Source: Carpediemonas membranifera BICM (taxonomy: Eukaryota; Protista; Fornicata). Taken from it: a DNA stretch of 64,000 bases. The translations under genes were made by a program, and so were the position numbers. The stretch is taken from assembly GCA_019828565.1 (NCBI GenBank), contig JAHDYR010000002.1, positions 248,001 through 312,000 of the forward strand, in the 5' to 3' direction. The notes under the pieces were generated by a model, which saw only the letters and a list, made by a program, of their open reading frames with translations, made no database searches and was not told where the DNA came from. Shown one piece after another: positions 38,138 through 59,854 of this stretch (positions within the stretch are counted from its first letter, which is position 1; the number at the start of each line of letters is the position of its first letter).

Positions 38138-41100
38138 GAGAAAGAAAGAAAATTTAACGTATCCTGTACACCTGTGTAAATCAGGGAATTACCAGTTTGC
38201 ACCACCCCATGTCCCCGGGAACGCCTTAGCGTGTTGACTTCCCTTCGTGAGCGAGCCTGATACTACGTTGGGGGCGTTAGCACCATCACCGTCAGGGTCC
38301 AGCTGGTAAGGCTGGGTAGTCCCTTGCATGTTGACCTATCAACTGGCTGGCCCGATACCCCCAAAGTCGGGATAACCCAGGTCTTACTCTTGGGGGTCCT
38401 TCGGGCCCCCGTTCTGCCTGGCACCCGCAAGGCCTTGCCCTGCACACCCGCCACCGGGGCCTTCTGCTCGGTTTCCCCCTACAGGGCTCCTCTCAGGGAT
38501 ATGTTCTCCATACCATTCGACCCAGTTTGCAATTTTTCAGGCACCCGCCGAAGCGGTTTCGGGCTTGGCGTTTGCCGTACCACGCAATTGGGCCAGTTAT
38601 GAAACCCACCGATCATCGCTGGGTAGCTATATGTTTCACGGCTGCGTTCGGGCTCTTCCACACTTTCCGTTCCGGCATGGATCCCCTCCTCAAGGATTTG
38701 TTCCCTATAGGGCTTCTTCCTAACTTCCGGCTGGTTCCAAGTTTTGGGTGCCGGGCCGTTCGGCGCAGCTCTGTTTTGGTCCAGGTGCCGCCCAGGTGGT
38801 ATTGTTGCCTTATGGTTACCCTCCTGTTTGGCTGCTGCGCCCCGATACCTCGCACGTACGTGTATACATGTGCATACGTGCCCCGCCCTATGGCTCTGGG
38901 TTATTTCTTATACGTGTGAAGAGTGTGCCGGTTCTGCCGGCTGAATGTTGTCTACGTTCCCAGTATGGGTGAGCGTTTGTGTGTTAGCGAGATTAGTGGG
39001 CAAAGGCATGGGAAAGAACCAACAGGGGAGTTAAGCAAGGGTGCGTCCTGGCACCGACACTGTTTGTGCTGTTCATGGCTAACTGGCCCCACCTGGCCAG
39101 AATGAAAATCAAGGGAGAACGGTACGACATCAGAGAACCGCCAAGGACCACGAGCCACCTCAGCGACCGACTACCGGCAGCACTTACCATGTTTGTGGAT
39201 GACACTGCGGTCACAGGGAGCAAACCGGAGCATAGCCAGATGGTCGCCAACATAATGGTGGACATAATCAGAGAGCATGAAATGAGGGTGAACGCCCAGA
39301 AGAATGTAATGATTAGCGTGGACAGAACAGCCCTAGTCAGGATCGAGGGGGTAACACTACTGCCAGAGAAGGAGGCGAGATACCTGGGATTATGGATCGC
39401 AAGTGGGAAGGACCCTATGTCGGCCTGCATAAGGCGGAAACAGGAGCAGAGCGAAAGGTACAAGAGACTGGTGAGATGGGCAGGGTGGACCAGGGCAAAC
39501 ATGCCAGCACTAGCGAGCAGGCTACTACTGGAAATATATATATGGCCCAGGATCCTCTTCGGAGTCGAGGTGTGGGGGAACGCACCGGGAGTTAGAAGGA
39601 TCTGGAATGACTGGCAGGGAATCATGGCAGGAACAGGACCGGGAGGGGGCGCAGCCATGAGGCTGATGAATGGATGGGTGGACCTCCAGGCACACATGGA
39701 ATGGCTGGCAGTCAAAAGGATAGTCAACTACAGGGACCAGGATATACCAGTCAGAAACAGAGAATGGGGGCGAGGCACGGTTATGTGGGAAGCTAGGGGA
39801 GAGAGTGCAGCATCTACTGGAGGGCACCAGAGAGGGAGCCCCCAAACCAGCGCTACTGGATTATGGCATGGAAACGATCAGGAGGGGGTGGATGAAGCGG
39901 TGCAAAAGCCGTACGGCACTAGGACTAATGGAAATCATGGGGACAAGGAAATTAAGCAAGTGTCTGCAAGGTAAGCCTACGGTAGACCGAAAGGCTGGGA
40001 AGGGGCAAAGCAGGGCGGAATGGAAGAGAATTGTATCCATTGCAGCCAATGTCAGCCCATCCCCATCGTCGGCAGAGAGAGGGGAGGGCCCTATGAGAGC
40101 CATCACAGAGCTGGCCCAAGGCGCTGACCTGAAGAGAGAAATTAGCAGACTATGCCCCCTATGCTCGGAGGAGTCGGAGGTGAGCCTGTTCTACAGGATC
40201 ATTAGGGAAAAGCCAGGACCAGCAAGGAAGCAGGAAATGATCAGGGAGTGGGCAGAGGGCCAGAGGCTAGGATCGGCAGCGCACATAATCTGTGAATGCC
40301 CGGCAGTAGACAGGGGAGAAGCTTGGACAAAGCTGTGGACAGCAGCGAAGCACAAAACTAAGGACTTGGAAGTAAGGCAGGGCCCCCAGGGCGAATGGTA
40401 CCAGGAAAGACCCATCCTAGAATTACAGCAACTAATAATATGGGGCTCGGAGGACATTTGGGAAGGCCTCACGGCAGGACTACGGGAACTGGCAAAGGTT
40501 TACAACAGCTTCAAGGTGGAATAGAAGCATGTCATGAACCCCTGACTCCAGGACCGGGAAGGGATGGACAAGGAATCAGCCATGGACCACCCTCGCTGGT
40601 GCTAAGCTCCTGGGATCAGTGAGGAAAGGCCCCACGTATCCCGGTAGCCAGGAACCAAAGCAAGGGAAGGAACGACTGCAAGGAAATAACAGGAAGGACA
40701 GACCAGAAATAAGAAAGAAAGGACATGCAACAAGGACAGAGCAAGGATAAGGTCAAGGAAATCCATATTCATATGGTTGCACCACTCGTTGGGACCCCAA
40801 GGAAACTGCAGGGACTGGCCACGGGGGTCGGAGGGGCACAGGTGCCCCTGCCGCCCTTGTTAACGACATGGGAAACCAAGGACATGTAGTGCAAGCGAAA
40901 AAAAAGCAAGCGAAAACACTGCTGCTCAAAGCAGTATCGCCGACCAACGCTTCCTGACGAGGAAGCACCTCAAATATGTTTCATCCGCCCCTCCTGTCCT
41001 CAAAAGACAACTACTAGCAGGCATTGCCTTTATTGGGGACCCCGTAATCATCCATCCCTTCAAAACTGAGCTTGCAACACACTCATCGACGGGCAATTTC

Positions 41101-41336
41101 GTCTCGGTGGCAATCCCAAACCTAAAACGGGACAACGCCCGCTATAAGCGGGCTAAGGATGCCTGTAATGACCTACTCCAAGATGCTGAGCACCTTGCAG
41201 CTGCATTTGGGCTCTCCATCCGGGAAGGTATCCTCAAACTCTTTCCCCTCATTGCCTATGATCTTGTCCACACGGTTGGAACGCTTAAGGCTGCCCTAAT
41301 CCACTGCAGGTTCACGGGACTCCCCCAGCTAGCAGC

Positions 41337-42458
41337 ATGGACTGGAGCAAGTTCGCAGATTTCATCTCCGCCAGATGCCCTACAGTGTTAGACCAACGGA
41401 ACGATCCTTGGCCTCCAACCATATCCACTGTCCCGAACTCTCCGAGCCTGACATGGCAGGCAGTCGGTCAAAGAGAGCCTCTTGGTCCCCGCATCGCTCA
41501 CTCCGGCCGGCCCGGCCCCATTGTATCTCCGGATGGTCTCAACCTCACGCCGTTCATGGGCCTCGAGGTAATCCACTTACTGTATGGCGCCTCTCCCGTG
41601 TTGGGAGGACATGCGATGACTGAGCTTTATGCCGAATGGGGTGGAGCCACAGCGGCCGACCTTCAGTCTTCCTTATCGAATACCTTATCAGACAGCCTTA
41701 TCTCTCCCATTCGCCGGAAGGCCTATCCAGTCGATGACTCTACTATATCCATAAGTTCCTGTTCAAACTCTGATGTTGAGCTCGCAAGCCCGATCCCTGT
41801 TAGCGTGGAAGAGGTTGCGCGGCAGATTCGGAAAGAAATATCGTCTTGCGAAGAGAACAGCATTTATCCATCATCCCCGATCGTAGCTGAGGAGCCTAAC
41901 GCCCGTTGGGGCCCTCTCATGAGCATCCCAGTTCACGCCGACGGCAACTGTGGCCTTCACTCACTTGCTGTCTCTCTGGGTATGACGGGCCTGACGAGAC
42001 GAGAAGCCGTGTCGAAACTTGCCTCCGCCATCCAGAATGGTACAGTGGATCTTAACTCCTCGTGGAGATCCACGGTGCGCACTTTAACCACACACACCAC
42101 CGCTAGCGACATTGGTAGTGCCTTCCTATCCACCACAGACCTCCGCAATATTGCATCGCTCTTTGGAAAAAATGTGCTTATTGCTCATCGATATGATGCC
42201 AACACAGTCTCAGTAACCATCCCAGCATTATCCGAGTTCTCTACACTTCCTCTCAATATTGACGCGCTCAAAACGATGCTCAAAACCGATTACATCCTCA
42301 TTAGACTGAGTGCTCTGCACTTCACGCCTCTTTTTCCGTCTGTGAGGAGCGCAGAAGCAAGGCGCCTGCAATATGCTGAATATCGTCCAAGAAGAGCCCC
42401 CTCTAGTGTGGCTCGCAACAACATCGCCGCTGAAGGCCTCGATAGCGCCCCCCTCTAG
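41337..42458 (+). CDS. LINE-A segment with an OTU-like cysteine protease domain
   Basis: IPVHADGNCGLHSLA (catalytic Cys loop) and LSALHFTPL (His). Confidence 0.75.
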   Translation: MDWSKFADFISARCPTVLDQRNDPWPPTISTVPNSPSLTWQAVGQREPLGPRIAHSGRPGPIVSPDGLNLTPFMGLEVIHLLYGASPVLGGHAMTELYAEWGGATAADLQSSLSNTLSDSLISPIRRKAYPVDDSTISISSCSNSDVELASPIPVSVEEVARQIRKEISSCEENSIYPSSPIVAEEPNARWGPLMSIPVHADGNCGLHSLAVSLGMTGLTRREAVSKLASAIQNGTVDLNSSWRSTVRTLTTHTTASDIGSAFLSTTDLRNIASLFGKNVLIAHRYDANTVSVTIPALSEFSTLPLNIDALKTMLKTDYILIRLSALHFTPLFPSVRSAEARRLQYAEYRPRRAPSSVARNNIAAEGLDSAPL

Positions 42459-42781
42459 TGTGGCCCGCAACAACATCGCCGCTGAAGGCCTCGATAGCGC
42501 CCCCTCTAGTGTGGCTCGCAACAACATCGTCGCTGGAGGCCTCGATAGCGCCCCCTCTAGTGTGGCCCGCAACAACATCGCCGCTGGAGGCCTCGATAGC
42601 GCCCCCTCTAGTGTGGCCCGCAACAACATCGCCGCTGAAGGCCTCGATAGCGCCCCCTCTAGTGTGGCCCGCAACAACATCGCCGCTGAAGGCCTCGATA
42701 GCGCCCCCCTCTAGTGTGGCCCGCAACAACATCGCCGCTGAAGGCCTCGATAGCGCCCCCTCTAGTGTGGCCCGCAACAAC
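42396..42781 (+). repeat. 51-bp coding tandem repeat (APSSVARNNIAAEGLDS), about 7.5 copies
   Basis: Directly visible; two units carry an extra C that shifts the frame. Confidence 0.92.
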
Positions 42782-43546
42782 CGTGATGGCGTCCATGGCG
42801 CTCTCATAGGCTTGTCTGGCAAGAGAGAGGGTCCTGTTTCTCATATCCTAGTGGTCGACTTTGAAGGACTAGGAACTGCCGTAGACCGCAGAGCCACCAA
42901 ACAGAGTCGCGTCTCATATCCCGTAGAGGCCGGCGCCACACTCCTAGCCCGCGTCAAGGATCCTGAAACGGGGATAATGATGTGGGACGTCGCAGGGGTC
43001 CACTGGGGCGGCTTAGAAGTTGATATCCCAGCGCAGTTAATGCAGACAGCTTTATACCAAGCGGCAGTTGTTCATGGGTGTCCTCCCATGAGCTTCAGAG
43101 TACACCCCGACCACCCCGGGATCTCATTCCCCAGCCCGACCGACTGGCTTCACCACCTCACGGTCATAGTGAGCTCCCTCCCGAACTGCATCATGGTCGC
43201 CAAAGACCCGAGACTTGAGAACTCCGTCCTAGAGTCATGGGTCTCGGAAAGCGATGCCCCCTTCCTTGACAAGGTCTATGACATAAGTGATCTAGAGTCC
43301 ATAGACAAAAGATCCTTTGGGCATATCCATGACTACTGCCGTTCACCCGAGTTCTCTGAGGCGATGTCGATAGCCCAATGTCTCACAATGGTGAAGTGCC
43401 CCTGCCCGTACCACATTGGAACAGATCCAGGCTACCATTGTGCTCTCAGTGACACTGTAGCTTTCGCGGCGGTACTGCACACAGTCTCATGTCTCGACCG
43501 AACATCTAGGGGAGCTATCACATCCACGTACTCTGGAAATCACTGA
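42782..43546 (+). CDS. Maelstrom-like DEDD/ECHC nuclease domain (LINE-A)
   Basis: Motifs ILVVDFEG, YPVEAG, VHGCPP, MVAKD…E, KVYDISDL and CPYH…YHCALSD. Confidence 0.75.
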   Translation, partial: RDGVHGALIGLSGKREGPVSHILVVDFEGLGTAVDRRATKQSRVSYPVEAGATLLARVKDPETGIMMWDVAGVHWGGLEVDIPAQLMQTALYQAAVVHGCPPMSFRVHPDHPGISFPSPTDWLHHLTVIVSSLPNCIMVAKDPRLENSVLESWVSESDAPFLDKVYDISDLESIDKRSFGHIHDYCRSPEFSEAMSIAQCLTMVKCPCPYHIGTDPGYHCALSDTVAFAAVLHTVSCLDRTSRGAITSTYSGNH

Positions 43547-43562
43547 TGCATGGAGGAAAGAC

Positions 43563-46500
43563 TTGGATGTCCTCATCGGCAACTGGTCCTCTCTCCTGCC
43601 CGACCTGGCCGTGCTACTACTCCAAGACCTCCACCTGCCAACGCTTGAGGAGCTGCACCACATCCTCAAGGAGTACGTAATAGCACCTAAGGGTGGCTGC
43701 TCCTTCCCCACAGGTGATAGGGCCAGACAGGCTATGACGTGCCGTCAATTTATTGCAGTGCGGAGCCCAGCTCGGCGAGGGTGGGAATGGTTTGATCCTC
43801 TTGCCAAGATGATAGCGGTGGCGGATGCGGCAGGCATAGTCCCTCCAAACAGCCTAGAACAGCCATTCATCAGGATAGCGACGGTGAATAACGACAGCTC
43901 CTTCAGCAATCAGTTGACGGCTCAGCAAGTTTACTGGGAGTGCCCTCCTCACCGAGACCTACCGCAATCTGCTGCAGAGCTTCTGGCTCTCAACGTTCCT
44001 CCCTCGGCAGACAACTCCAAAGGAGTAGTCAAGAGGTCCTACAGAGCGCCGGATCATTGGTTTCTAGTCCCGAGAATCCCCAACAAGCCAGTGCGAGGGC
44101 TCCGCAAAGTCAGACTGAGAGGGCCCATGACTCGAGGAGACATGGATGCCCTCATACAGAAGGCAGAAACAGCATGGGTCAGCGAAGCGTGGGACCTTTC
44201 TCCGGTGTTCAAAGCTCTCCAGAGTGCCCGAGCTCACGACGGTAACTGGAGTAAGGTTGAGCCACCGGCTTCTTCCACGCCAGCTCCAAGCTTAGCCACG
44301 CGAGTCTCGCCTGCGACCTTCAGGAATCAGAGAGGGCGAAGTCAAGCAGGTAGACGACCAGTAAATGGTCACCTCTACTCGTGGAATTGCACATCACTCA
44401 ACATCACCAAGATGACTCTTGCTCTAGTACAAGACGTGGACATCATGGCCATTCAGGAGCTATGGTGGTGGGCCCAGTCCCCGGAGCTGCCCACAACGAA
44501 TGACAAGGTCCTGCTATACCACGGAGTGATCAAGTCAGAGTCCGAGACAAAGCATCTAGGCGTAGGCATCATGCTGAGGAAGGAATTAGCTGAGCTCTGC
44601 ACATACGTCGAGAACCAACCCCACTCTCCAAGGTTGATTCAAGCTGACCTAGGCTGCGTGTTTGTAACAGCTGGCAAACTGAAGGTCCGTGTCATGTCCA
44701 TCTATAGTCCATGCACGGGAGCACAAGCCAAGAAAGAGTTCCACACTCTACTGTCCTCCGAGGTGAAGAAAGCTATTGAGCAAGGGCTCCAAGTTCTTGT
44801 CATGGGAGACTTCAACACGAACCTACTAGATCCATCGACGCTGTGGGCTACCACCCTAAAGGAGTGTGGCTTGAGACTGGTAGTGCCCGACGGCCCGACC
44901 TTCATGGACAGAGTAATTGATGGCATCGCAGCAACACCTAAGCTGGCTGATCTCATCAAGAAGCCGCTCACAGTATCCCTTGAACCCAAAGGACACAGAG
45001 CGGTTGTAGCAAGATCAGGCATAACGGGTTACTTTCGCACGAGGAGCAAGGCAACAGCAGTCCTCAACGAAAGACATGTGGCTAACGTACTTGAATGCAG
45101 CAAGGATCATCGAAAGGCGAGGACTCTCCTGAGGAACATCAGCCACCTTGATGTCGACCAAGCCTTTCAAAGCCTGACGTCGACTATCAACCGATGGGCG
45201 TTGGTGGACACTGCGGCCTCACATGAAGTGAGAGAAGTCGAGAGAGCAGAAGACTACGACCACTGGTTTGTCGCCGGAGAGCAGATCGGTATTTCCCCTG
45301 AACGGCTCTATGAGCTCATCATTGAGGATCATCGCCACCAACATCAGCTCAAGGAGAGGACGAGCAGAGGCCCCAAAGCTCTCGTGTGCTCTGAGCTATC
45401 ATCAGCAATGCTATCAGTAGCGTTAGCATCCTCGGAGAGCCACGCCCACTCAACACTCAAAGCCTACCATGCCCGAGCCAAGCGAGTCTCTGAGAGCATG
45501 GATGTCATGTCCCCTGAATTCTTTAGATACGTCCATTGGAAGCTTTTTGAAGGGGCAGGCCAGAGTGTCTGGTCTTCGCAGAGACCTGGAAGGCTTACTC
45601 AGAGGACCCGGCCTTCCTGCTACCACCACAGTAGGAGGCAGAGTGATCACCAACCGAGAAGAAGTAGCCAAGGCCTTCGAGGAGTGGTATGCGTCAGTAT
45701 CATATGTGGCAGGAGCAGTAGAACCATCCATCTCTCGCCCCCGATATAGAGCTCGAAATCACGGACACTCTCCTGGAAGGGGCTCTCAAATCTGCCAAGA
45801 ATAGATCAGCCCCAGGCAGTGATGGACTAACCCCGGCAATTTTCAAATATTGCCCAGTCCTCAAGGAGGCGCTCAAGACTCTGCTACAGAAGTGCATTGA
45901 CCAACTCAAGACCCCAGCAGAGTGGCATACCGCCGTGGTAATTCCATTGAAAAAGCCCGGCTCTACTAGCGATGCTCCTGTGGCGTTCAGACCTATCTCC
46001 CTACTTTCCACAGCCCACAAGGTGCTCGGCACAATGATGATCCGCACGATTGACCGAGACAACCCTCTTCCCCCTGAACAATACGGTGCAAGGCCGGGTG
46101 TTTCATCGGTTGATGCACTATGGGCTATTGAGCACGCGAGACGTGGGTTCAAAGCGACCCACATTGGGACTCTGGACGTGGCTAAGGCCTTTGACCGTGT
46201 CCCGAGGAGAGATGCATTGGACTCGTTGAGGGGGAACAGAAGGGCCATTGAGATGTTGAAGGAGATGCATTTGCACACAAGGATCTCTATGCGAGGTAGC
46301 AGCACTAGCGCCGCTACCAACACAGGAGTACGGCAAGGATGCACCACTGCTCCCTTCATCTTCACAAGATACCTTGCGGAAGTCCCTCACATCATTGCAA
46401 GCTTAACCGCTCTAGGGAAGGAAGCAATTGAGAAGCTTCCTCCCGACATAGAGACCCTGAGACGAGTGGCAGCAAGGCCGTGCGTTCCCTGGATTGTCAC

Positions 46501-47652
46501 AGTCCTGTTCGTTGATGACATTACAATAGTAGCTCCCTCCCCTTAAGTGGTTGGAGGCAGCACTTACGGCGGCATGGACATGCATGCTAGCGCTATCCTT
46601 GGAGCCCAACGATAAGACCACCTATGTCTCAGAGGACGACACCCCCTCCCTCACCATCCATGGCAATCCAGTCATTAAGAGAGACGCGGTCAAGCTCCTA
46701 GGGGTCCTCTTCGATACGTCCCGAGACTTCTCCACCCAGAATAGGACTATGGGCGAAAGGATAGACAGAGAGCTACGACTACTGAGAGCTAGCGGCGTGA
46801 TGCACTCCAAGTTCTGTCCTCGCATTGTAGAGGTCTACACCCTCCCCAAGCTGCTGTACGGGTGGAGCGTCTGGGCTAATCATAAGGCTGTCTCCCAGGT
46901 AGGCAAGCTTGCATCGGCAGCCCTAAGGATCAGCCCAACTGCATCGGAGGCGAAGTACCTGGAGCTAGGCTGGCTGCATCCAGAGGCAATGCTCCTGCTG
47001 GACAGATTCAAGCAAGGGGGTGAGATGGGCGAGAATCCATCCGGGCAAGGATCTCCCAGACTGCATTGCTGAGGCACAAGGCAGCCTTGGCCTGTCCCAC
47101 TCCGACAGCCTTGACCTAGCAGCCTGTCGAGCAGCCCAGCTCTCTCACGACATAATCTGCCGTGGTAACAAAGTGGCTGTCAGGAGATACGTCACGGAGT
47201 CGGCACTCACCCGCCCTTTTACCCGCTCTAACTACCCGGCCAGGCAGCCATACCTCGACCATCTAACGGCTGGGCCAGCGAAGCGCCTCGCGATGCTACG
47301 GCTATCGTGTCTACCAATGCCAACGAGAGGGGCTCTTCCTGACGCGTGGCAGCCGGTCAGGGGAATCCTACAGGACCTGAAGGATGAACCGGAAGCCGCC
47401 GCAGCTCTTGAGGCATGTCCTCTCTGTCAGGGTGAGGCCATCGCCGCGGCTGTGATTGAGATCCTGACGTCCCCTACCAAGACCTTAGCAGTGCTGAGAT
47501 CCAGGACGTGGGTTGTCCTGAACCAGACCCACTTGGCTAAGTGCGACCACTTCAAGATTAACCCCATCCTCCTTTTCAAGGACCCCCTGACCCTGAGCAG
47601 GCGTGACGACGCCAAGCTCACACATATGTTGAGTGTACTTTGTGACGCGTGA
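43563..47652 (+). CDS. LINE-A APE endonuclease + reverse transcriptase (several frameshifts)
   Basis: APE motifs SWNC, AIQE, SIYSP, MGDFN and IDGI. RT motifs APGSDG, FRPISLL, QYGARPG, LDVAKAFD, GVRQG, FVDD and KLLGV. C-terminal CPLC…HLAKC. Confidence 0.9.
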
Positions 47653-48743
47653 CTGGTAGGTTCCCTCGCTTACATAGGAAAACGCCACCGTCCTCCCCGG
47701 TCTCAGGACCTCCTCGATCATCGTCCTGAGGGAGCCCCATCGGGCTCGGAGCACAGAGTCCCGCAGCGCCAAGAGCTGGAAGTTGTGAGCTGGCCGACCC
47801 GCGTGGGTCATCTTTTTACCCTTCTTCGAAGGGGTTTTAGGCCCTCCTCTCCCTGCAGCTTCAGAACAGTACTCTTGGGCGCCGCAGCTCTGGCTTCCAA
47901 TGTTATGAGAACCGTTGCCCTCCTGCGGCTGATCACCGCTCGTCTGGCTCGGGTTGTGGCCAGTGCCTGGAGGTGGACACCCCGGCACTGTATCAAAAAA
48001 TAAACTCAAAAACTCAAAAACTAGTGCAAGCGAAATGTTGTAAGGGGTAACAGGACAACCAGGCCTAGTGCCTGGGGGTACACCACCCATGCCCTGACCC
48101 ACGCCACCTAACCGGGGTAGACAGCATGGACTTAGTCACTTTCCCCGCCTTCGGGTAGGCTTCTTAACAGAGTCGAGGGGGCATGGAATTGGGGAACCGG
48201 ACAGACGAGAGGGTGCCGTGGCTGAACGGCTCTACAAGGACTGCAGGGAAGCAAGGAGTGTCATAGTCAAGGTTCTGCAGGACGATCCTGCCTGTCAATG
48301 CCCCGAGGACAGACCCCCAGGCTCCCCGGATAGTTGCCGGACTTTCAGGGAGACAGGAAAGCATATTTGCACGGAGATGGCCGCAGGGCCTCTGGGGCGA
48401 TTGGAATCGGCTTTCCGCGGAGACAGTAGCACCGAAAGCCCAAGGCAAACGCTGCTGACCAGTTTGCCACGGGAAATAGGCAGTACCCCGGGGCACTCAG
48501 CTCCAAGACAACGGGAAACAAGCTCAGTCCGGGGTCAGAATCCAAGCACCATAAATTTCTTTCTTTCTTGTTAGCGAGATTAGTGTTCGGGGTTGAGTCC
48601 CCCTTCCGCGGCTGGGTGCTACCGGGGTACGTGGGGCTTGCGTCCCCCGCTGATCCCAGGAGCGCTCCGCTTCGGTTGAGGCGGGGGGTTGGGTCCCAGT
48701 TTGACCCTGGTCCCAGAGGTCATAGGATTCTGGGATGGTGTAC

Positions 48744-50151: not shown

Positions 50152-53100
50152 TGTGACATGTTAGAGATGGAACGGAGAACTGTTTACATAAAGTGCACTG
50201 CAGGTTGTGCAGGATAACCCATCACACTTCCCCTCCGGAGGGCGACCTAGCGGCGTCCGCGAGTGCGGAACTTGCGCTTATAGCGGTCGAACAAAGGGCG
50301 CAGGTGCGGGTTGGTCTGGAGGTAATCGTCAAGGGCTGACAGCTGGTCGTAGTAGGCGTTATACGGGATGTAACTGTCTTCAGAATCTTCGAGGCCCTGC
50401 CAATGGATAAGCATTTCGAGGCGGCCAGAGCGTTCGCGATGCCCGACGATGGACTCGACAGGCTGTTCGTCCTGTTCGAACCCGACCAGGGTCTCAAGGT
50501 CCTTGAGCGACGTGTTATGGGCACGTTTGAACGGCACGAGGCGATCGGCATGTACGAGTAGCTCGGCCTTCGTGACCAGGTCCTGGAGGCGGTAGGTATT
50601 GGGGCTCTTCCCTTCCCCCACCATGCGGACAGGGCCGCGAATAGGGGCGAGGATTTTGGATGGAGTCTTCGTGGGGTAGCGTACGAGGACGAGTTCCTGG
50701 TCTTTCCAGGGGAACTCTAGAGTGTTGGCAGAGGAGGCCTTGGACTGCTCGTACGCCTCGATGCGCTGGCGGGCGAGGTCCTGAACCGCTTTCACGTCGG
50801 ATTGGAATTTCTTGATTGCGGCTTGGGTTCTCTGGGAGGTGAGGTTGAGGAGTTGAATCGCGTCTTCAAGCTGGTTGTCCGACAGAGTGGTGAGTCTGGT
50901 AGTTGAGCCGAAGAGGATCTCGAACGGCGAAAACCCGGTGGTGGCGTGGGTGGATGAGTTGACGACGTGTTGGACGAATGGTATCAGGTCGACCCAGTCG
51001 GTTGACTTAGCGTCGATCAGCAGTGCGCGGAGGCGGCGCATGATAGTTCCGTTGGTCCGCTCGACGATGCCGTTGGACTGTGGATGGTATGCCGTGCTGA
51101 AGCGGTGGTTGAGTGTGAGGTGTCGGTTGAGCTCGGCGATGAAGGCGTTGCGGAACTGAGATCCTTGGTCTGTCTGAATCTGCTTGGGCAGTCCGAACTG
51201 AGCCCATAGGTGGAGCATGGCAGTTGCGGCTTCCGCGGCTGAAGTGCTCTTGGTAGGATGGAGGAGCACGTATTTCGAAAATGTATCGATGAAGACGACG
51301 ATATGGGCGAACCCATCGCAGTTAGGCAGGGGCCCGATCGTGTCGATCTGCACGGACTCGAATGGGGACAGGGTCTGGGTGGAGTGCCAGGGGGTTGAGG
51401 TCTTCTTGTGGGCCTTCAGCTTCTGGCAGACTGGGCAGGTGGCCACATAAGTGGCGACGTCGTCGCGCATAGACTTCCAGGAGTGGCCGGCGGCCTTGAG
51501 GTTGCGGATCGTCTGGTCGACCGCGACGTGTGCGAACTTCCCAGCATGCGCCTGGACGATGGTGTCGAGATGGTCGTCCGTCGTTGACTCGTCCGCGCTG
51601 GCGCGGACGGGGGGCCTGGATAGGGCGTCGGCGACGAGGTTTGACGAGCCCGGAATGTGCCGGATCTCGAACGGGTATTCTGAGAGGATTAGGCGCCACC
51701 TTGTCAGCTTCCGGGTGCCCTCCTCTGATTTCATCAACAGCCAGACCAAGTTCCGGTGGTCTGTTGAGATTGAGAATGGCTTGAGCTTGAGCAGGCTACT
51801 GAACTCGGGGCGGGTGACACAGAAGACGATTGCGTACAGCTCCTGCTCGACAGTAGCCCATCGGCGTTGGGTGTCCGTGAAGGTTTTGGAGAAGAAGGCG
51901 AGAGGACGTTTGGTGCCGTCCTTATGCTGCCAGAGGACGCCGCCCAAGGCGATCGTGGAGGCGTCCGTCTCGAGGGTCCATGTGGCGTTGAGGTCCGGGA
52001 GGGCCAGGGCCTCGTGGCTGGTGGACAGTTCCTTCATACGGGCGAAGGCCCTGTCATGCTGCTCAGTCCAAGGAAGCTTGTCGCTGCCCTTGGGTGACCC
52101 TTTCAGGAGGTCGTTCAGCGGGCCGGTGGATTCGGCAGCTGCGGCGGCGAGAGTGGGGATGTAGGCGGCAAGGTGGTTGAACTTCCCCATGGTCCGGCGG
52201 AGTTCTGTGACGGTCGTCGGGGGCTGCAGGTTAAGGATGGCGTCCACGCGGGACTGGGCGATGGAGCGGCCACGCGCGTCGATCACGAACCCGCATACTT
52301 CGACCTGGTTAGCGCCGATCACGCACTTGTCCGCGCGAAGACGCAGGTTACAGTCGTCGAGGCGTTCGAGGGTCGTTCTGAGAGTTGAAAGGAAGTCGTC
52401 TTGACTGCGGGCGAAGAGGAAGATGTCGTCTATGTAGACTCTGACACCGGGGATGCCCTCCAAAAGCGACTCCATGGCCCTTTGGAACTTCGCGGGGGGC
52501 GTTAGTGAGGCCAAAGGGTACGCGCAAAAACTCATAGTGGTGACCTGGGACCGAGAAGGCGGTCAGGGGGGATCGAGGCGGGGTCGACCCGTTGTTGCCA
52601 GTATGAGGTGCGGAGATCAAGGCTCGCGAAATAAGAGCATCCGCTGGCCTCGTGTGGGAGCTCGCGAAGGTCCGGGAGGGGAAATGCGTCCGGAACGGTC
52701 ACGTCGTTCAGTGCGTTGTAGGCTACACAGAACCGGGGGTCTCCATTTTTCTTGGTTGCCATGGTGTGGGGGGACGCATACGAGGATTTCGAGTCCCGGA
52801 TGATGCCTAGACGGCGCATCTTCTCGATCTCGGCTTGTGCAGCCGAGCCGGGGGTCCCAACAAGGGGGCGGGGCCTGCACTTGATCGGCGTCGAAGACGT
52901 GAGTTCGATCACATGCGGCTCCAGGTCGCTTCCTTCCGGGTGTAGCGTCGCGTTGAACAGGCGAGGTCGTTCTGCCACTATAGCACGGACCAGAGATTGG
53001 AACTCGGGCCCGTGGTCGTCTGGCACCGTAACGGAGAGGTACTCGTCGTCTGTCGACACCTCCACCAGGTCGGCGTCCAACATGTGGTGGTCCTCAAGGT

Positions 53101-54866
53101 CGTCTGGATCGCCCATTGAGGCGGGCATGATGACCAGGCGGTCGTTGGCGATGTACCCAAGGTGGGCAAGAAGGTCCTTACCAACGAGGACTCGTCCGCT
53201 GTCACCCTTGATGACGTGGAGGGGCCAGACGGTCGTAACAGGGCGTCCGTCTACGCTAGGGAGCGTGATGGCGGCGACAGCGCGCTTACCAGTGGAGATG
53301 GTCTTGTTCTCGGCAGATGTGATCACAAGGCTCGAGTCTTCGGTTGAAAGAGCAAGCTCTTCGGCCTTGGCTGCAGAGATGGTGCAAACATCGGCTCCCG
53401 TATCAAGTTTCCCGTTACAAGGAGTTCCATCGATGTTCACCGTGGTGTTGATCGGAACAGAGGTGGTGTGAACCTCATCGGCAGAAGCTGCCTTCTTCTG
53501 GAGGTATATGCAGTTTTCTGTCGTGTGTGTGGAGTTGTAGCCGTGGTGCTTGCAGAAGTTGGAGAACCGCTCGGGGATTCGGAACTTCTTGCGGTCCTTA
53601 AACTGCGCGTAGCGGTCGCCGGAATCGAGCAGCCGGGGCTCCGGGAGGTCGTTGGCGTCGCTGCGGTCCTGGCTGTCCTCTCGGGCGGATGTCTCGGGCT
53701 TCTGCGGAGTGTCGGGCCGGCCATCGCGAGCGTGACGTGGCTTCTTGGGAGGCTTCGAAGGTGTCGAAGCCTCCTTGAACGCGCGCCAGGGTATCACGAC
53801 GTTGCCCTCGTGGTCCACGGCGAGATCGCGGAGGGCTGCAATGCATTCGGCGGTGGTGCGGCGCTGGCCGTCAGCATCCGTCTCGACCAGGGCTTTGTAC
53901 AGTGTCTTTGCGGCGCTGGTGTATCCTTCGAGGGCGAAACCAGCAACGATGTCACGCGTGGTGCTCTCGGGGAGGCGTGCGTAGTTGGTTGCGTCGACGT
54001 CCGGGTTGAAGGCGTTGAGGAGGTTCTCGACCTTGCTGAGCGCGAGCCTGTGCTGCGCCGAGGGGCCGAATAGAGTGGGGTGGGACGAGCTTGCAAGGGC
54101 AGCAAGCCGGGTGCCCCTGTCCGTGGAAGGCATCAGGGCTAAGTATAGGTGAGGGAGAATGGTCTCGGCCTCAGCAGCGAGGCGTTGGCGGAGGCTGGAG
54201 GTGTCTGCCACAGGGAACGAGGAGGGCAGACCCTCGTTCGCCGAACTAACGAAGTCCGCGCTGCGCGAGGGCTCGTCATCGAGCGGGTTGGCCAGGCAGG
54301 TGTAGGTCAGGAGGGAGATGGGTTGGCCTGGATCGGCCCGGAGGAGGGATGCGGTGTCCTGTAGCTCTTCCATAGTGTCGTCGAACAGGGCTTGGGCCCT
54401 GCGGAACGCAGGCTTCGTAAGGCTCGAGCCCTTGTACCGCGCCTCGGCGGCCGCGCAGAGGAGGAATAGGTCATCCTCCAGAAGGGCCTTGATCGCCCGG
54501 AGGCGCTTCGAGATGAGGTGGGAACGCGGGGAGAATGCCGGTTCCCCTGCATCGCGTTTGCTTCCCTCGGTGTCGCTAATGAGGGATTTGGTGAGCTCTT
54601 CGAACGTCGGGAACGCTTCCGAATGGCGCCATGAAGCCTTAATGAGTTCAAGGCTCTTGGCCGTGAGGCAGTTGAAGAACGAGCGCGGATGCTTCACGTT
54701 CAGGACCTCACGGGCCCACTTTTCGTGAGCGGCGTGGAGCGTCTTGGCGTCTGAAACGCTCTGGATAGTGTGAGCATCAGAATATCGATATTGTGACATG
54801 TTAGAGATGGAACGGAGAACTGTTTACATAAAGTGCACTGCAGGTTGTGCAGGATAACCCATCACA
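50152..54866 (-). mobile_element. Complete Ty3/gypsy chromodomain LTR retrotransposon with identical 75-bp LTRs
   Basis: LTRs at 50152-50226 and 54792-54866 (TGTGA…TCACA); 4-bp TSD GCCG; PPT GGAGGGGAAG. Confidence 0.93.
50247..54799 (-). CDS. Gag-Pol (gag with CX2HX5HX4C knuckle, protease, RT, RNase H, integrase, chromodomain); two breaks at G-runs near 52495 and 52570
   Basis: Motifs LDTGAD, YIDD, TDAS…EQE…TDH…ADALSR, HHCC, D…TDQG…GIVER and VESIVGHR…IHWQG. Confidence 0.92.
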
Positions 54867-56820
54867 GCCGGAGGTACAGTGCCGCCTGGCTTAGCCAGTT
54901 AGCTGTGAAGAGAATGAACAGAGTGGGGGCCACCACACATCCTTGCTTGACCCCCATGTTTGTTCTGGACCATGTGCTTGCCCCTCGTACCGAGATGTAC
55001 GTTTCTGTAAGTGTATTTCGGATGGCCCTCGTCAGTCTTGGGTGTACCCCCATGAGCGTCAACTTGTTCACCAGCAGGTCCCTTGGGACCGTATCATATG
55101 CTTTTGCTATGTCAAGTAGGACGCTGGTACGGTTTCCGGACTGGTGGAGTTGGGCTAGGAGGGCTATGTGATCCACTACAGTTTTCCCTTTCATGAACCC
55201 AACTTGCTCTCTGGGGATGAACTTCTCCACCGTCGGCCTGAGGCGCCATTTCAGTATCCTCCCGTAGGCTCTGTATAGGAGGGGGGTGAGGGAGATCGGT
55301 CTGTACGAGCTGGGCGTGAGCTTGTCCTTCCCAACCTTGTGGATAGGCGACACCGCTGCATACTTCCATGTGGTTGGCATGGTCCCGCTGTCGTATACTT
55401 TCGCGAGCAGGACTGTGATTGCCTCGTACGCTGACTCGGGGAGGTCCCTCAGACAATCTCCAATAATCCCGTCCAGGCCTCCGGCCGAGGACTTCCTTAT
55501 GGACTTGACCGCCGCTGTCACTTCTTCAAGCGATGGCGGATGGTCCTCCATGTCCGTTTCCGGCTCGGTTTCCCAGGTGGGTTCCTTCCCGGAGCTTACC
55601 TTCGCGTACTGCTCCTGGAGGGAGTCTGCAATCTCCCTCTGCCTTGCTAGAATCTTGTTTCCAGCCTTCAGCATCACCGGGAGACCGGCGTGCTGCTTCT
55701 CGTTCCAGAAGCGGAACACTTGGTTTGCGAGGATCCTTTTTGTCGTTTTGTACCCATCACGGGATCCAACCTCAACCTGCTCATTCCAGTCATGTTGGAA
55801 GGTCCTCCATGATCTGCTCAGTGCTCCGTTGAGGGACTTTTTGATATCTTTGGCGGCGGTTTTGCTCCAGGTGGAGGCTTTGGCCAGCCGTTCCCATACC
55901 TCACTAGGGATACGTTCCTGGTTTTCTACAGCGAATGGGTGCCTTCTGGAGGTAGCAAACCCGGTGGACAACCATTTCCTTATGAGAGTCTCCATCTCGT
56001 CCACTGGTATTTTGCTGTCTAGTGGTGGCCACTCTTCTAGCTTGGGCCCTGTTCTCCTGGGTTTGACCAGCCACGTATCGATCCGTGGGATTTCCAGTCT
56101 CTTTGATATCTCTGGTTTCCCTGTCGGGTTGTTATCCCAGGTGAGCTCTATGGCTTTGTGTGCCGACCCCCAGTGCCCGATTGTGGTCTTGTCTATTACC
56201 CTAACAACCGGGTTTTGGATACCCCCTGTTACCGCTGCATAGTCTATTGTGGACGTTCGGGAGTTAGTCCCGTACGTCGGTGCAGTTGGTGCTATTGGGG
56301 TGAGGTTCCATCGCTGGAGGGTCATCGCAGTTGCTTGCCTGAGTTTCCCTGGCCTCCTGTTCCAGTCCCCGATGATGATGATGTCACACCCCTCATAGTT
56401 CGCGACGGTTTGCTCTAGCATCCGGTCGAACTCCTCAATCTCGGGTCGTGCACATCCACTATCGGGAGCGTAGATATTGATGACTGCCGTGGCCCTCGAT
56501 GCTTTGAGGATGCTTACTTGGATTCGTGGGTTCGTCCCGTCGGACACGCCTACGTCCCATTCCGCTTTGGAGTGCGGGCTAATCAGTGTGGCCAGTCCCT
56601 TTGTGGGTCGCTTGCGCGTTGCCTCTAATGGCTTGACCTCTCCTGCACAGGCGTACTGGAGATCTACCCAGCAAGGGATGGTGGTATTACCGTACCGCTT
56701 GGTTTCCTGGAGGAGGATCGCATCAGTCCTTATCCTCTTGCGGATGGATAAAGCTATGGATCCGCTGTAATCGTTTGCGCCCGCTAGGTGCCCTTCGCTG
56801 TTTAGCGATATTATTCTCAT
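54867..56820 (-). CDS. LINE-B ORF2 5' part: APE endonuclease + RT
   Basis: Motifs ISLNSEG, LLQETK, INIYAP, IGDWN, TIDY, SAHK, AGGLDG, YRPISL, QVGF, LDIAKAYD and GVKQGCVVAP. Confidence 0.92.
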
Positions 56821-57405
56821 TCAGGTTGTTCTGACATAAACTGCGGGAGTTACCCTGCGCGCACTAATCTGCTCTTTGTAGACATTCCCTTTTTGGGCGT
56901 ACCTTTTGGTGGGTTGCTGAGGCCTCTAACCGAGCAGTCGTTTCCTTTTGGGCAGGCTTATGCCTGTATTCCCTTAGTTCCCGGCCTAGGGCATACCATT
57001 CCCTTTCACAGTCGGTGCCTCACGATGCTTGTCGGCATTGCTGCCGGTCTCCGCTTAGCTTCCTTCCTCGCCGCATGGCAGGACCATTACCTAACGAGCT
57101 TAGGTGGGAGCGACAGTGGTTGTTGCCCCTCCCAAGGCTGGAGTTACAGCCTGCCGGACAGGCAGGGCTCTTTTTACCTTTTGGTAACCCTGCCCCCGGC
57201 CCCTGTGGGGCACAGGGGTTTGTTGAAAAATTGTTTGAAAAAAGAAAGTGTTGCGTTTTTGCTCCCGCCGGAATGGTTCGCCGGTGTCCATTTGGACTTT
57301 AAGGCCCTACTAGTCACAGCCTGGCCATACATGCTGGTTCATATATATACCTTTAGCTCAGACTTATATCACACTACCCTCTGCACCTCTTACTTATGAT
57401 TGTTT

Positions 57406-59674
57406 CTACTCTCCTTCCTTCTCCTCGTCTCTCTTCCTTCTCAGGTCAGACCTGAAGTTATCCATCTTGGCTGCTAGGGTGAAGCTGAGGGCTTCGTTGG
57501 TTGCCGAGAGTCGGGCCGCGCGGCTGAGTAAGTCCTCGTTCTCTTCGGTTAGAGACGAGCACTTCTCCGTTGTCTTCCTGAGGTCCTTCCGCATCTCGTC
57601 CAACGCAGCTTGGGCTGCTCTCCGGGCTTCCCGTTCTTCCTCCAGCTCCTGGCTTTTTGGCCTTGAGCTCGTTGATGGTTCTGGCTGCAGCTTCTTCCAG
57701 CTGTTGTCTGACCTCTGCTTCTCGCCGGGCCATGGCTTGGTCCAGCAGGGCCGCTATGCCTCTGCCCAGGTCGGTGTCCTCCTGTCGTGCTCTTTTTGGG
57801 CTGCAGGTCCTCTTGGTCCACCTGTCTGACCTGGCGGGTCTTGGCTGATGGGTTGGGGGTATGGGGGGGCACAGCTCTTAGTTGGAGGGGGCCCGGGCTC
57901 TGTTCGCTCTGTCCTGCTACTTTGCGGTTGTTCAGTGACAATTTGCCCGCGTGGAGGGCCATATAGGCCCCCTATGCCGCCATTCGGCAGGTAGACCTCC
58001 GTCCTCCTGTGGAGCATCTTGGCGAGTTCAGTAGCCCTTCGTCTCACCTTTGTTCGAAGCGCCTGCTTCCTCTCGGTCCTCAGTCTGTTCTTGGCGTTAG
58101 TGCTGGCGCCTTCCGGGAAAACACAGTTCAGCGTGTCCCATGGCTTCCCCCCTTTTGGGTGTTCCACGCCTGAGCCCGCCAGGGCGAGTTTGCCTATCCA
58201 GGAGGCGCTCCTCAAGGTGCCCACTCGCCTCTTCCCTCTTTCTGCTGGTTCATCCGTGATACCCCAGTCCCGGGGGGAGGAACGAGGGGAGGAAGTTGAT
58301 GGAGCCTGTCTCCGGGTCGACACACATGTTGGCCAGGAGTTCTCGATCGTCGGCTGGGACCTCCGTGAAGTATTTGAAGATCTTCTTCCTGGCTTCTCTG
58401 CCCATGTGGCCTCCAGCTATGTCGAATTTGTGGACGGGCATCAAAGACGCCGCTTGGGATAGGGTCATCGTTTTGGTGTCGCTGACGTCTAGAGTAAGCA
58501 TCTTTTCCGCGTCTATTTCCGTGGGCTCCCCCCTCAGGTTCGCCCAAGGGAAACCGTCTTGGACAGCGCGGCGGCGCCCGTTCCACTCCGAGTGGATTTC
58601 CAGGAGGATGGGTCGCGCTGGTTCGCCTACTCTCGCGAGCGATTCTGGGTTTCCGATGATCACGGCTGTTCCTTCCAGGGCTCTGGTGATACCCTTTCCG
58701 GAGCTGAAATCGTTTTCCTCCCAGTTGGTCATGATAATCTGGCCCCGTTTGGGGTTCTTGGTGCCAAAGAGGTTGACTTGTTGGGACAATGGGGTTAGGC
58801 GACCGGCCGCCCCGGCGCCGAGGCCGTGTCTGGCGTTGACTTTGGTCGCCAGGTCCTTGTATTCATCATGGTACGGCGACTCCCTGCCCATGAGCATGCT
58901 TCCTAGGGCTGTGAGGTGGGCTTCTACCTGCCCCCAGTCCCAGCCTGGGTTGTCTCTCATCCAGAACGCTGTTGCTAGTCTGACGTAGAATATGGAGACA
59001 TCTGCTAGGGTGCAGTGGCAGTGGTGGGGTGCGTGCTTGTGATAGGGGCACACCACTTTTGCCTCCGGGCGCTGTTGGTACCTTCTGGTCCAGGTCCGGC
59101 CCAGTTCGGACTGGGGTCGGGAGGGGAGGCCGGTGAGGCTCTTCTCCCCACTATTGGGGTAGAACCAGGTCAGCGTGTCGAGGATGTTGGGGAAGATCGT
59201 GTTGAGGTCAGTTTCATCCATGAGGCGTAAGCTTAGCCAGGTGCGGAGGTTCCCGTCTGGGACGAACTTCTCACTGGTCAGGATGCTTCTCTCAGCCTCG
59301 ACTCCCTTAGCCACGATGTGGACGTGGGTCTTCTGTGGCCCCGAGTCGTCTTCCAGTCTCTTCAGCTCTGTAGCCATCTCGGTGCACCATCGCTTGGCGT
59401 GGGGGAAGTCTGCTTCGTATCCCTTGGGGGCTTTGCCCGTGGTGACGTCGACAAACGTAGCTGGTGGGCAGCCATGGATGTAGTGCGTGGCCCACAGACA
59501 TTGGTCCAGGGCATCCACTGTGATGTCTTCCCCAAGCATCCCGTGCATGTAGTAGAGGATTTGCTCGTTAGCTGGGTCGAAAATCAGTGCCGCCCCTTCG
59601 CAAATGATGGCCTCGTCTCCTTGGTTGGATCTGGCTCTTCCTTCCTCAAAGTCCACCATAGCGATCAACTGCAT
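57406..59674 (-). CDS. LINE-B ORF1: N-terminal Maelstrom-like domain, unknown middle region, C-terminal coiled coil (frameshifted)
   Basis: Motifs IAMVDFEE, IICEGA, IHGCPP, IVAKG…E and CPYH…CHCTLAD; overlapping ORFs 58250-59674, 57754-58323, 57458-57733 and 57406-57603. Confidence 0.72.
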
Positions 59675-59738
59675 ACTGTTAGAATGGCCAGTTAATCCGG
59701 GGATATACGGAGGATAAACACCCTTTTGCACAAGAAAC

Positions 59739-59854
59739 TGCAAGAAAAAATGAGATTCACCCGTATCTTTTTCACTATTTCACACGTTTCACCAACGTTG
59801 GTGAAACGTAGAGAAACGTGCGGAAGGTACGGGTAAGTCTCATTTTTGCTTGCA
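59739..59854. repeat. Long inverted repeat / hairpin with a perfect 26-bp central palindrome
   Basis: Arms 59739-59769 and 59824-59854 give 27 of 31 Watson-Crick pairs; ACGTTTCACCAACGTTGGTGAAACGT at 59784-59809. Confidence 0.85.

Follow-up and report, generated by a model that had tools for sequence, protein, structure and literature searches.

Organization of the LINE-A Locus

The window, a stretch of 64,000 nucleotides from the genome of Carpediemonas membranifera, carries at 40917–48021 on the forward strand a non-LTR retrotransposon, LINE-A. The element is flanked by the 14-bp TSD described in the first-pass annotation, the sequence TAGTGCAAGCGAAA at 40887–40900 being repeated exactly at 48022–48035. 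That annotation placed the start of the element at 40901, but the family-homologous body begins at 40917: all other copies match only from query base 17, and 40901–40916 is a copy-specific 16-nt filler, a partial repeat of the target (GCAAGCGAAA) at a truncated 5′ junction. Full-length copies have an ATG 12 nt inside the 5′ end of the element (MGKSSSGYRG...), and in the window copy ~80 nt are missing from the 5′ end, and this family ATG with them.

All features of the element lie on the same strand. The N-terminal region of the long open reading frame (ORF) (40917–41801) is conserved in the sister family A2, has no Pfam match and is broken in the window copy by a C-run indel at 41321. It is followed by a predicted divergent OTU-like cysteine protease domain (41802–42389) and by a linker (42396–42781) made of in-frame tandem repeats of 51 bp, or 17 residues (APSSVARNNIAAEGLDS), for which Tandem Repeats Finder gives a period of 51, 7.5 copies and 96% matches in the window. 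The 17-residue motif occurs 8 times in the window copy and 2 to 13 times across the full-length copies, and the two extra Cs in C-runs that had been noted as breaking the repeat are found at 42448 and 42704. A predicted MAEL-type DEDDh nuclease domain (42782–43553) and a region of ~270 residues conserved in families A2 and A3 (43560–44366) lead to the APE endonuclease (44367–45036; Pfam Exo_endo_phos, E 1.3e-7, 32 bits, above the cut-off). The RT domain (45953–46700; Pfam RVT_1, E 2.6e-19) is split in the window copy by indels at 46229 and 46539 and is continuous in the sister copies L029 and L035 (RVT_1, E 2e-20). The C-terminal region extends over 46701–47652 up to the stop codon and is broken in the window copy at a G-run at 47016. 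The 3′ UTR (47653–48021) ends in a (CTCAAAAA)n tail.

The Pfam matches place APE ahead of RT on one strand, as in APE-type LINEs, and the element shows the TSD, 5′ truncation and repeat tail expected of a LINE, in which the 3′ tail is a simple repeat or A-rich. The C. membranifera genome of 24 Mb contains ~16 full-length LINE-A copies that are 98–100% identical, the median divergence between them being ~0.75 substitutions per kb. Every other full-length copy has its own private TSD of 11–15 bp, and 5′-truncated copies also occur in the genome. The exact TSD in the window, the private TSDs, the near identity of the copies and the low substitution rate together show that LINE-A is a recently active, very young non-LTR retrotransposon. 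Taken as a whole, the account developed below, in which such a LINE encodes the OTU-like domain, the repeats, the MAEL-type domain and APE in one frame, with RT joined at CUU-UUU-G, is one that we consider likely.

A Single Frame from the N-Terminal Region to APE

In natural sister copies the N-terminal region, the OTU-like domain, the repeats, the MAEL-type domain and APE share one frame. Copy L032 is open from the ATG to the stop codon at 45801, giving a product of 1583 residues in the order OTU-like, repeats, MAEL-like and APE, and copy L033 has an open frame of 1748 residues. The entire RT frame is contained in L029 and L035, and none of the assembled LINE-A copies is free of breaks across both frames. 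The first-pass annotation had suggested that a single polyprotein extends from OTU to RT; L032 and L033 bear this out from OTU to APE; for RT it is not supported in that form, 16 of 18 assembled copies having RT in the +1 frame.

Three frame breaks had been counted before, and the window copy has eight in all. As proposed earlier, the breaks between the modules are indels: apart from the T-run discussed below, each of those in the window copy is a one-base indel in a homopolymer, and these indels differ between copies. The frame of APE and RT indeed extends upstream to 43461 and so overlaps the MAEL frame, whose end lies at 43543. The break in the latter is caused by one extra G at 43535, common to three other copies. 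Nine of the 13 copies without this G read across in one frame, and the remaining four break nearby at 43669, 44135 or 44148. Homopolymer runs of C, G, A or T contain nearly all one-base indels among the copies, most of which are restricted to one to five copies. The assembly was made from Nanopore and Illumina reads (PMC8516963). This pattern of indels between copies suggests that the variable homopolymer breaks are long-read assembly noise.

If instead the stops were real and the long frames arose by chance, the modules would be separate genes or decayed pieces. The window copy, like most of the assembled ones, does fall into 4–7 open segments, and the proteins modelled in the public annotation are short (KAG9393429.1, for example, has 508 residues). 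However, the break positions differ between copies and are almost confined to homopolymers, substitutions are nearly absent, natural copies are open across 1583–1748 codons, and families A2 and A3, at 27–53% identity, retain the order of the domains and their collinearity, so that separate genes or decayed pieces are very improbable. Two public gene models, KAG9393429.1 and KAG9391364.1, each cover a fragment of such an element, and their introns appear to be artificial.

The OTU-Like Domain

Both motifs of the DGNC…HF pair noted in the first-pass annotation are present, the Cys box as HADGNCGLH with its Cys codon at 41949–41951 and the His box as LSALHF with its His codon at 42318–42320. The Cys–His gap of ~123 residues in family A agrees with OTU-like spacing. 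The two boxes are conserved in families A, A2 and A3, as HADGNCGLH or HMDRDCGLH and as LHF, DHF or VHY, while the identity of the OTU-like region among the three families is 27–31%.

Assignment to the OTU family is supported by motifs, by language-model neighbours and by weak fold matches that are all to OTU proteases, and not by Pfam. The OTU HMM search suggested in the first-pass annotation gave no match in the element: PF02338 does not match the OTU-like domain at E values up to 5 or, in the genome-wide search with the same profile, even at 10, whereas that search detects only two host genes, at 81 and 47.7 bits. No PDB sequence or profile matches the domain, and its AF2 model is of low confidence (pLDDT 48.6). 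These results would be expected if the domain were not a protease and DGNC and HF were chance motifs in a lineage-specific domain. Against this, both motifs survive in three families despite their low identity, the UniRef name of the product is "OTU domain-containing protein", and 29 of the 30 named Atlas (language-model) neighbours have PF02338, with 180–186 shared features. Foldseek with the AF2 model gives E values of at least 0.4, with viral OTUs among the best matches. In the VIA fold comparison even this poor model ranks only OTU proteases in the top 16 rows (Z 3.3–3.9), and residues 45–174 of the model align with residues 35–151 of the nairovirus vOTU. The alignment would place Cys50 and His173 of the model on the catalytic pair of vOTU, which we take to be C40 and H151. 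A chance origin of the motifs is therefore unlikely, and 41802–42389 is probably a divergent OTU-type cysteine protease.

OTU-type Cys/His domains are carried by other mobile elements and viruses, including the nairovirus vOTU and the tymovirus PRO. They occur in Helitron and Ginger1 DNA transposons (PMC2836005), which belong to other element classes, and these transposon and viral OTUs are recognised by PF02338, in contrast to that of LINE-A. LINEs bearing a cysteine protease include NeSL/Utopia (Ulp1-like) and Dualen (Josephin-related) (PMC4640811; PMC9977147). Like them, LINE-A appears to combine a protease of a ubiquitin- or ubiquitin-like-cleaving cysteine protease family with RT and an endonuclease in one ORF; it differs in having an OTU-like protease, APE as its sole endonuclease and an additional nuclease of the MAEL type.

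The MAEL-Type Nuclease Domain

The predicted structure of the MAEL-type domain (pLDDT 77.7, pTM 0.79) belongs to the DEDDh/RNase H-like fold shared by Entamoeba EhMael (EHI_192630) and animal Maelstrom (5AF0, 4YBG). Foldseek finds RNase T with an E value of 2.8e-6, and Drosophila MAEL (4ybg) has the best TM score (TMq 0.52). In VIA, Bombyx Maelstrom occupies ranks 1–4 with a Z score of 13.0 over 199–200 aligned residues, and RNase T follows within 1 Z unit (Z 12.4, 177 residues). Since the two are tied at this level, assignment to the MAEL subfamily depends on the aligned length and the zinc motif. The Atlas neighbours of the domain are RNase_T and Rv2179c-like.

The sequence contains a D-F-E motif beginning at 42857, C-x2-H-x8-C-x3-D at 43403–43453 and a further invariant Glu. 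As in a DEDDh nuclease, D26, E28 and E146 are invariant among nine sequences from several LINE families, and every complete sequence retains H219-x4-D224. The ECHC zinc-binding motif is present as predicted ligands: E49 and C208 are invariant, and each of the eight sequences long enough to include the later positions has H211 and C220. The C-x2-H-x8-C-x3-D spacing is that of C290/H293/C302/R306 in Bombyx, and the C-x2-H-x8-C part is identical in the LINE-A domain and in MAEL proteins. Profile searches are silent on this relationship: Pfam PF13017 gives no match, the PDB profile search finds only ERI1 exoribonuclease 2 at E 0.11, and neither this domain nor the OTU-like one is tied to its family by Pfam, PDB-sequence or library-wide sequence search. 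The earlier MAEL-like call nevertheless stands, with Bombyx Maelstrom as the best fold match and with the ECHC and DEDDh residues in place, and assignment to the MAEL type at the level of fold and motif is well supported by the model and the conserved residues.

Unlike MAEL proteins, the LINE domain has no Pfam Maelstrom match and no HMG box, is encoded by a retrotransposon, either in a fused polyprotein or as ORF1, and appears to have Glu instead of Asp at the third acidic position. It shares the DEDD-type acidic residues and H-x4-D with the amoeba enzyme, which is active (PMC4408791, PMC2628886), and exoribonuclease activity is established for a protist MAEL in which DEDD and ECHC occur together (PMC4408791). 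Judged from residues and predicted fold, the LINE-A domain is probably an active Mg-dependent 3′–5′ exo(ribo)nuclease acting on the RNA or cDNA of the element itself.

The Junction with the RT Frame

The frame upstream of RT ends at a stop codon at 45799–45801 in 11 of 17 aligned copies; in the window copy an extra C at 45738 stops it earlier, at 45746. Homology sets the junction of this frame with the RT frame exactly at CUU-UUU-G (CTT TTT at 45543–45548). The T-run at 45544–45548 has five Ts in 16 of 18 copies, which puts RT in the +1 frame, and four Ts in the other two, which fuses RT to the upstream frame. When read with four Ts, the element aligns in exact collinearity with sister family A3 (FFRYVRGRLRKGAARQ versus FFRYVHWKL-LKGQARV).

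Ty1 uses a +1 frameshift at CUU-AGG-C, in which the CUU peptidyl-tRNA re-pairs one base downstream and RT is read in the +1 frame. At the LINE-A site, too, the Leu codon is CUU, and the base after it would permit re-pairing one base downstream. In contrast to Ty1, it has no rare or slow A-site codon; UUU is common in the LINE-A ORF (16 TTT against 24 TTC), so that no hungry-codon stimulator is evident. The candidate site also separates APE from RT within a LINE, unlike the gag-pol site of Ty1. We tentatively favour a real +1 ribosomal frameshift at CUU-UUU-G, at somewhat less than even odds.

A plain fusion would give an uninterrupted ORF of ~2200 residues (OTU–repeat–MAEL–APE–RT), the true run being four Ts and the fifth a systematic base-calling or polishing error. 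The collinearity with A3 and the two four-T copies agree with this, and the same sequence context can yield the same errors, while short reads polish repeats poorly. However, five Ts are found in 16 of 18 copies, and at the other variable T-runs (42331 and 47638) the frame-breaking allele is the minority (2 of 17), which indicates that the majority normally represents the true state. Moreover, nowhere else in the 7 kb is the majority of copies out of frame, and this speaks against systematic error on a wide scale. An error-masked fusion is thus rather doubtful, if still a serious contender. RT could also be made from a separate start, since an ATG in the RT frame (45469–45471; ORF 45469–45804) lies 25 codons upstream of the T-run, or LINE-A could be a defective family moved in trans; each of these two seems unlikely. 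If the junction at CUU-UUU-G is real, it would represent a frameshift between APE and RT, of which, to our knowledge, none has been described so far.

Sister Families and the Role of the Two Domains

In LINE-B, the MAEL-like domain lies in a separate ORF1 (58250–59743 of the window), as stated in the first-pass annotation, and is followed by an APE-RT ORF. Another assembly has a MAEL-type domain in an ORF1 of 1250 residues adjoining an APE-RT ORF2. The ORF1 proteins with the MAEL-type core in several LINE families contain no other recognisable RNA-binding module, suggesting that the domain would be the nucleic-acid-handling core of the ORF1-equivalent part. The few known LINE ORF1 types include those with an RRM plus coiled coil, a zinc knuckle or an esterase. 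A DEDDh/MAEL nuclease as ORF1 core, as it occurs in several families and also in another assembly, would be a new ORF1 type, and it would link the fold of the transposon-silencing factor Maelstrom to transposons themselves. In the literature searched, no LINE is reported to encode an OTU or MAEL domain.

In families A, A2 and A3 the OTU-like domain occurs together with the collinear MAEL–APE frame, whereas the ORF1-type families lack OTU, which ties OTU to the fusion of ORF1 and ORF2. These observations lead to a plausible scheme in which the OTU domain arrived along with the fusion. In full-length copies translation starts at the ATG near the 5′ end and one frame reads through to APE, and RT would be joined to the giant protein at CUU-UUU-G. 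OTU would most likely act in cis to cleave the giant protein, and removal of ubiquitin may be a further activity.

Alternatively, as the first-pass annotation proposed, OTU and MAEL may be counter-defence modules directed against the ubiquitin and small-RNA pathways of the host. Viral OTU proteases remove ubiquitin and ISG15, which would fit such a function. An exonuclease with the same combination of DEDD and ECHC, that of arenavirus NP, blunts host sensing by degrading RNA (PMC4408791). However, the MAEL-type domain is the conserved ORF1 core in several LINE families, which fits a housekeeping role inside the element's own particle better than an added counter-defence, and no host Maelstrom gene was found in the genome with the Pfam model. 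Counter-defence is thus an improbable, if not negligible, function of the two domains.

The preferred scheme of an ORF1 core fused to APE can be extended to a bolder one, in which metamonad LINEs use a catalytically intact MAEL-type ORF1 core that shares direct ancestry with animal Maelstrom, through capture or domestication, and in which LINE-A makes RT by a genuine +1 frameshift and OTU cuts the product. This combination is speculative, and we regard it as unlikely to hold in full. If the OTU assignment is correct, OTU would be the third ubiquitin/SUMO-type cysteine protease family in LINEs, after Ulp1 and Josephin, and its presence in LINE-A would strengthen the idea that such proteases have been recruited repeatedly upon LINE protein fusion.

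Boundaries, Copies and 5' End of LINE-A

An exact 14-bp direct repeat (TAGTGCAAGCGAAA) flanks the LINE-A element (40901-48021) at 40887-40900 and 48022-48035. On the plus strand, a Pfam scan of the window ORFs detects APE endonuclease and reverse transcriptase (RT) domains, and a tandem repeat with a 51-bp unit (7.5 units) occupies 42396-42781. A search of the C. membranifera genome (24.2 Mb, 69 contigs) has revealed about 16 full-length copies with an identity of 98-100%, besides truncated copies, and every full-length copy has its own target-site duplication of 11-15 bp and a (CTCAAAAA)n tail. The median divergence between copies is 0.75 substitutions per kb when the repeat is left out. The LINE-A family is very young and has been active recently.

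The remaining copies align to the window copy from 40917 onward only. Since about 80 nt shared by the other copies are missing upstream of 40917, the window copy is 5'-truncated, carries 16 nt of filler and has no start codon. The full-length copies begin with ATTTTCCGCACC followed by ATG GGC AAA AGT, the start of MGKSSSGYRG, and the leader before the ATG is 12 nt long (L021-L035, natural copies elsewhere in the genome). M-G-x-x-x-S is the usual N-myristoylation pattern, and the MGKSSSGYRG start hints that the giant LINE-A protein may be membrane-anchored.

The 5' junction is heterogeneous: about 25 A residues separate the target duplication from the element 5' end in copy L034 (C. membranifera genome, C1:741872-749114, minus strand), and in other copies 1-7 additional A or T residues stand at this point. 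Copy L029 (C36:3459-10823) is 5'-truncated, beginning at element base ~206, and lies inside an integrase zinc-finger-like sequence, with a flanking duplication of about 41 bp as opposed to 11-15 bp. Two full-length copies (C39:457999-464792 and 465031-472131) form a tandem head-to-tail pair with 239 bp between them.

One Reading Frame from the N-Terminus to the APE

The reading frame was analyzed in an alignment of 17 LINE-A copies, and all proteins are unaltered translations of natural copies, made with no consensus and no repair. The full-length copies have 2 to 13 repeat motifs, and apart from repeat number nearly all differences among the 17 copies are one-base indels within C, G, A or T runs, mostly private to one to five copies. 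Those of the window copy are at 41321, 42448, 42704, 43535, 45738, 46229, 46539 and 47016. The first-pass annotation, which had read LINE-A as a possible single polyprotein, correctly ascribed the frame breaks in the repeat to two extra Cs (42448 and 42704), and the one further indel that it required where the MAEL and APE frames overlap is an extra G at 43535, missing from 13 of the 17 copies. As judged from the alignment, several homopolymer indels per copy against almost no substitutions are the pattern that consensus errors of long reads leave in repeats with poor polishing; the assembly combines Nanopore and Illumina reads (PMC8516963).

Starting at its ATG, the frame of L032 stays open for 1583 aa (4 repeat motifs) and ends at a stop codon at window-equivalent 45801; L033 has an open frame of 1748 aa. 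Since these natural copies are open, the N-terminal region, the OTU-like domain, the repeats, the MAEL-like domain, a 270-aa region and the APE constitute one ORF. The entire downstream frame, from 45427 or 45494 to 47649, is intact in L029 and L035. KAG9393429.1 and KAG9391364.1, annotated as hypothetical proteins, are actually pieces of LINE-A and of its sister family; parts of the natural frame are missing from their gene models, apparently because introns were predicted so as to bridge frameshifts.

The APE–RT Junction

Homology of family A with the sister family A3 fixes the frame junction exactly at CTT TTT, 45543-45548: family A reads FFRYVHWKL and then LKGQARV, and A3 reads FFRYVRGRLRKGAARQ in a single frame. 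The T-run is T5 in 16 copies, in which the upstream frame continues to the stop at 45801 and the RT is in the +1 frame, and T4 in 2 copies, in which the upstream and RT frames fuse. The proposal of a single polyprotein thus holds for the modules through the APE, and its extension to the RT agrees with the two T4 copies and not with the 16 T5 copies. At two other variable T-runs the frame-breaking allele is the minority (2/17 copies), which by analogy makes T5 the probable true state at 45543-45548, the sole site with a majority state out of frame. One alternative is that genuine +1 ribosomal frameshifting at CUU-UUU-G joins the RT to the upstream frame. Ty1 frameshifting uses a CUU slip, which the putative LINE-A frameshift would share, but TTT is not a rare codon in the LINE-A ORF. 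The RT may alternatively be started separately at the in-frame ATG at 45469, or LINE-A may be a defective family moved in trans. A systematic assembly error is the alternative to T5 itself. A protein word-index search for Illumina-derived proteins that span the junction region gives no match.

The OTU-like Domain

The OTU-domain HMM check proposed by the first-pass annotation is negative. The Pfam OTU model does not match the OTU-like domain, although it finds two host OTU genes (81 and 47.7 bits), and neither sequence and profile searches against the PDB nor a protein word-index search with this domain gives a match. On the other side, a Cys box (HADGNCGLH / HMDRDCGLH) and a His box (LHF / DHF / VHY) are conserved across three families at 27-31% identity, UniRef names a public fragment an OTU domain-containing protein, and of the 30 language-model neighbours that have a name, 29 are OTU clusters, with 180-186 features in common. 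The structural model is poor (pLDDT 48.6); its weak Foldseek matches are strongly enriched in OTU proteases, and all top 16 VIA rows obtained from it are OTU proteases at Z 3.3-3.9. At the ends of the VIA alignment, Cys50 and His173 of this pLDDT 48.6 model fall on the nairovirus catalytic pair. On the whole, a true OTU-type domain is quite likely, and its protease activity is putative.

The MAEL-like Domain

Pfam scans, run on every ORF piece and on natural long ORFs, detect APE and RT only and no MAEL domain, PDB sequence and profile searches with the MAEL-like domain give nothing but ERI1 at E 0.11, and a protein word-index search gives no match. An exhaustive profile search of 1.84 billion representatives matches 6 proteins, three from C. 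membranifera's own elements and three ORF1-like proteins with the MAEL-like domain only; no canonical OTU or Maelstrom protein is among them. Within the C. membranifera genome the domain has >80 matches, mostly copies of a few LINE families. The Pfam Maelstrom model has no match in the whole genome and thus detects no host gene for a canonical Maelstrom; MAEL-type domains are present in dozens of LINE copies.

Despite these blank sequence searches, the fold and the motifs bear out the MAEL assignment. The domain is modelled well by AlphaFold (pLDDT 77.7, pTM 0.79). Foldseek matches it to RNase T at E 2.8e-6, with the top TM of 0.52 to Drosophila MAEL (4ybg), and VIA-align places Bombyx Maelstrom first (Z 13.0, 199-200 residues aligned), tied within 1 Z with RNase T (Z 12.4, 177 residues). 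In the Atlas, searches by shape and by features both lead to RNase_T and Rv2179c-like exonucleases. In an alignment of nine sequences, D26, E28, E49, E146, D167, K205 and C208 are invariant, and a CP[YFH]H-x8-C-x3-D motif is shared, its eighth position being His in 8/9. The spacing of C208-x2-H211-x8-C220-x3-D224 is identical to that of the ECHC zinc site of Bombyx Maelstrom, C290/H293/C302/R306 (PMC4408791). The domain also retains DEDD-type residues and H-x4-D, and exoribonuclease activity is established for the Entamoeba MAEL protein in which both motif sets occur (PMC4408791; PMC2628886). We conclude that the LINE-A domain is a DEDDh nuclease of the MAEL type, which is probably active.

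Possible Roles of the Two Domains

LINE-B-type families have the MAEL-type domain in a separate ORF1 protein. In families A, A2 and A3 it is fused in frame to the APE, and the OTU domain is found in these families only. This pattern suggests that LINE-A is an ORF1–ORF2 fusion, in which the putative OTU protease would release parts of the giant protein in cis; since A, A2 and A3 are related, the association counts as one evolutionary event and argues weakly for this scheme. A deubiquitinase is an equally ordinary alternative for the OTU-like domain and is compatible with cis release. The MAEL-type nuclease more likely acts in handling the element's own RNA or cDNA, and a role as an added counter-defence module is less likely.

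Cysteine proteases of the ubiquitin/SUMO-protease type, as is putative in LINE-A, are known in other LINEs, being Ulp1-like in NeSL and Utopia (PMC4640811) and Josephin-related in Dualen (PMC9977147), whereas that of LINE-A is OTU-like. OTU domains are known in the DNA transposons Helitron and Ginger1 (PMC2836005), whereas LINE-A has an OTU-like domain in a LINE. A literature search of an incomplete library found no report of a LINE that carries an OTU domain or a MAEL-type nuclease.

MAEL-type ORF1 in LINE-B and Other Families

LINE-B, the second LINE in the window (54862-59743, minus strand), has its MAEL-like domain, as the first-pass annotation had described, in a separate ORF1 (58250-59743, minus); an APE–RT ORF2 follows (54862-56820, minus; cut short). 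The domain also occurs in ORF1-like proteins of 1200-1250 aa, two of which trace to another assembly, one directly upstream of an APE–RT ORF2. BLASTP of the LINE-A N-terminal and post-MAEL regions against LINE-B-type ORF1 detects no homology outside the MAEL domain.

A short motif downstream of the MAEL domain (window 43900-44060, and the corresponding part in A3 and in the proteins P0004-P0006) may be common to the fused and ORF1-type families, reading SYRAPDHWFLVPR in A and ...IPPGWGV / IPREWGA in ORF1-type proteins; its BLASTP match reaches only E 2.4. Loci L043 and L044 of GCA_002919055.1, the assembly of another organism (PPCM01001449.1, PPCM01002078.1), are LINEs with an ORF1 of 1233-1250 aa, which combines the MAEL-type domain with a long C-terminal coiled-coil-like part and has an identity of only about 30% to the Carpediemonas domains; in L043 an APE–RT ORF2 of 1177 aa follows. 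The truncated ORF2 of LINE-B ends beside an ORF with aspartyl-protease (gag/protease) matches at 52532-54799, and an LTR element has therefore probably inserted into it.
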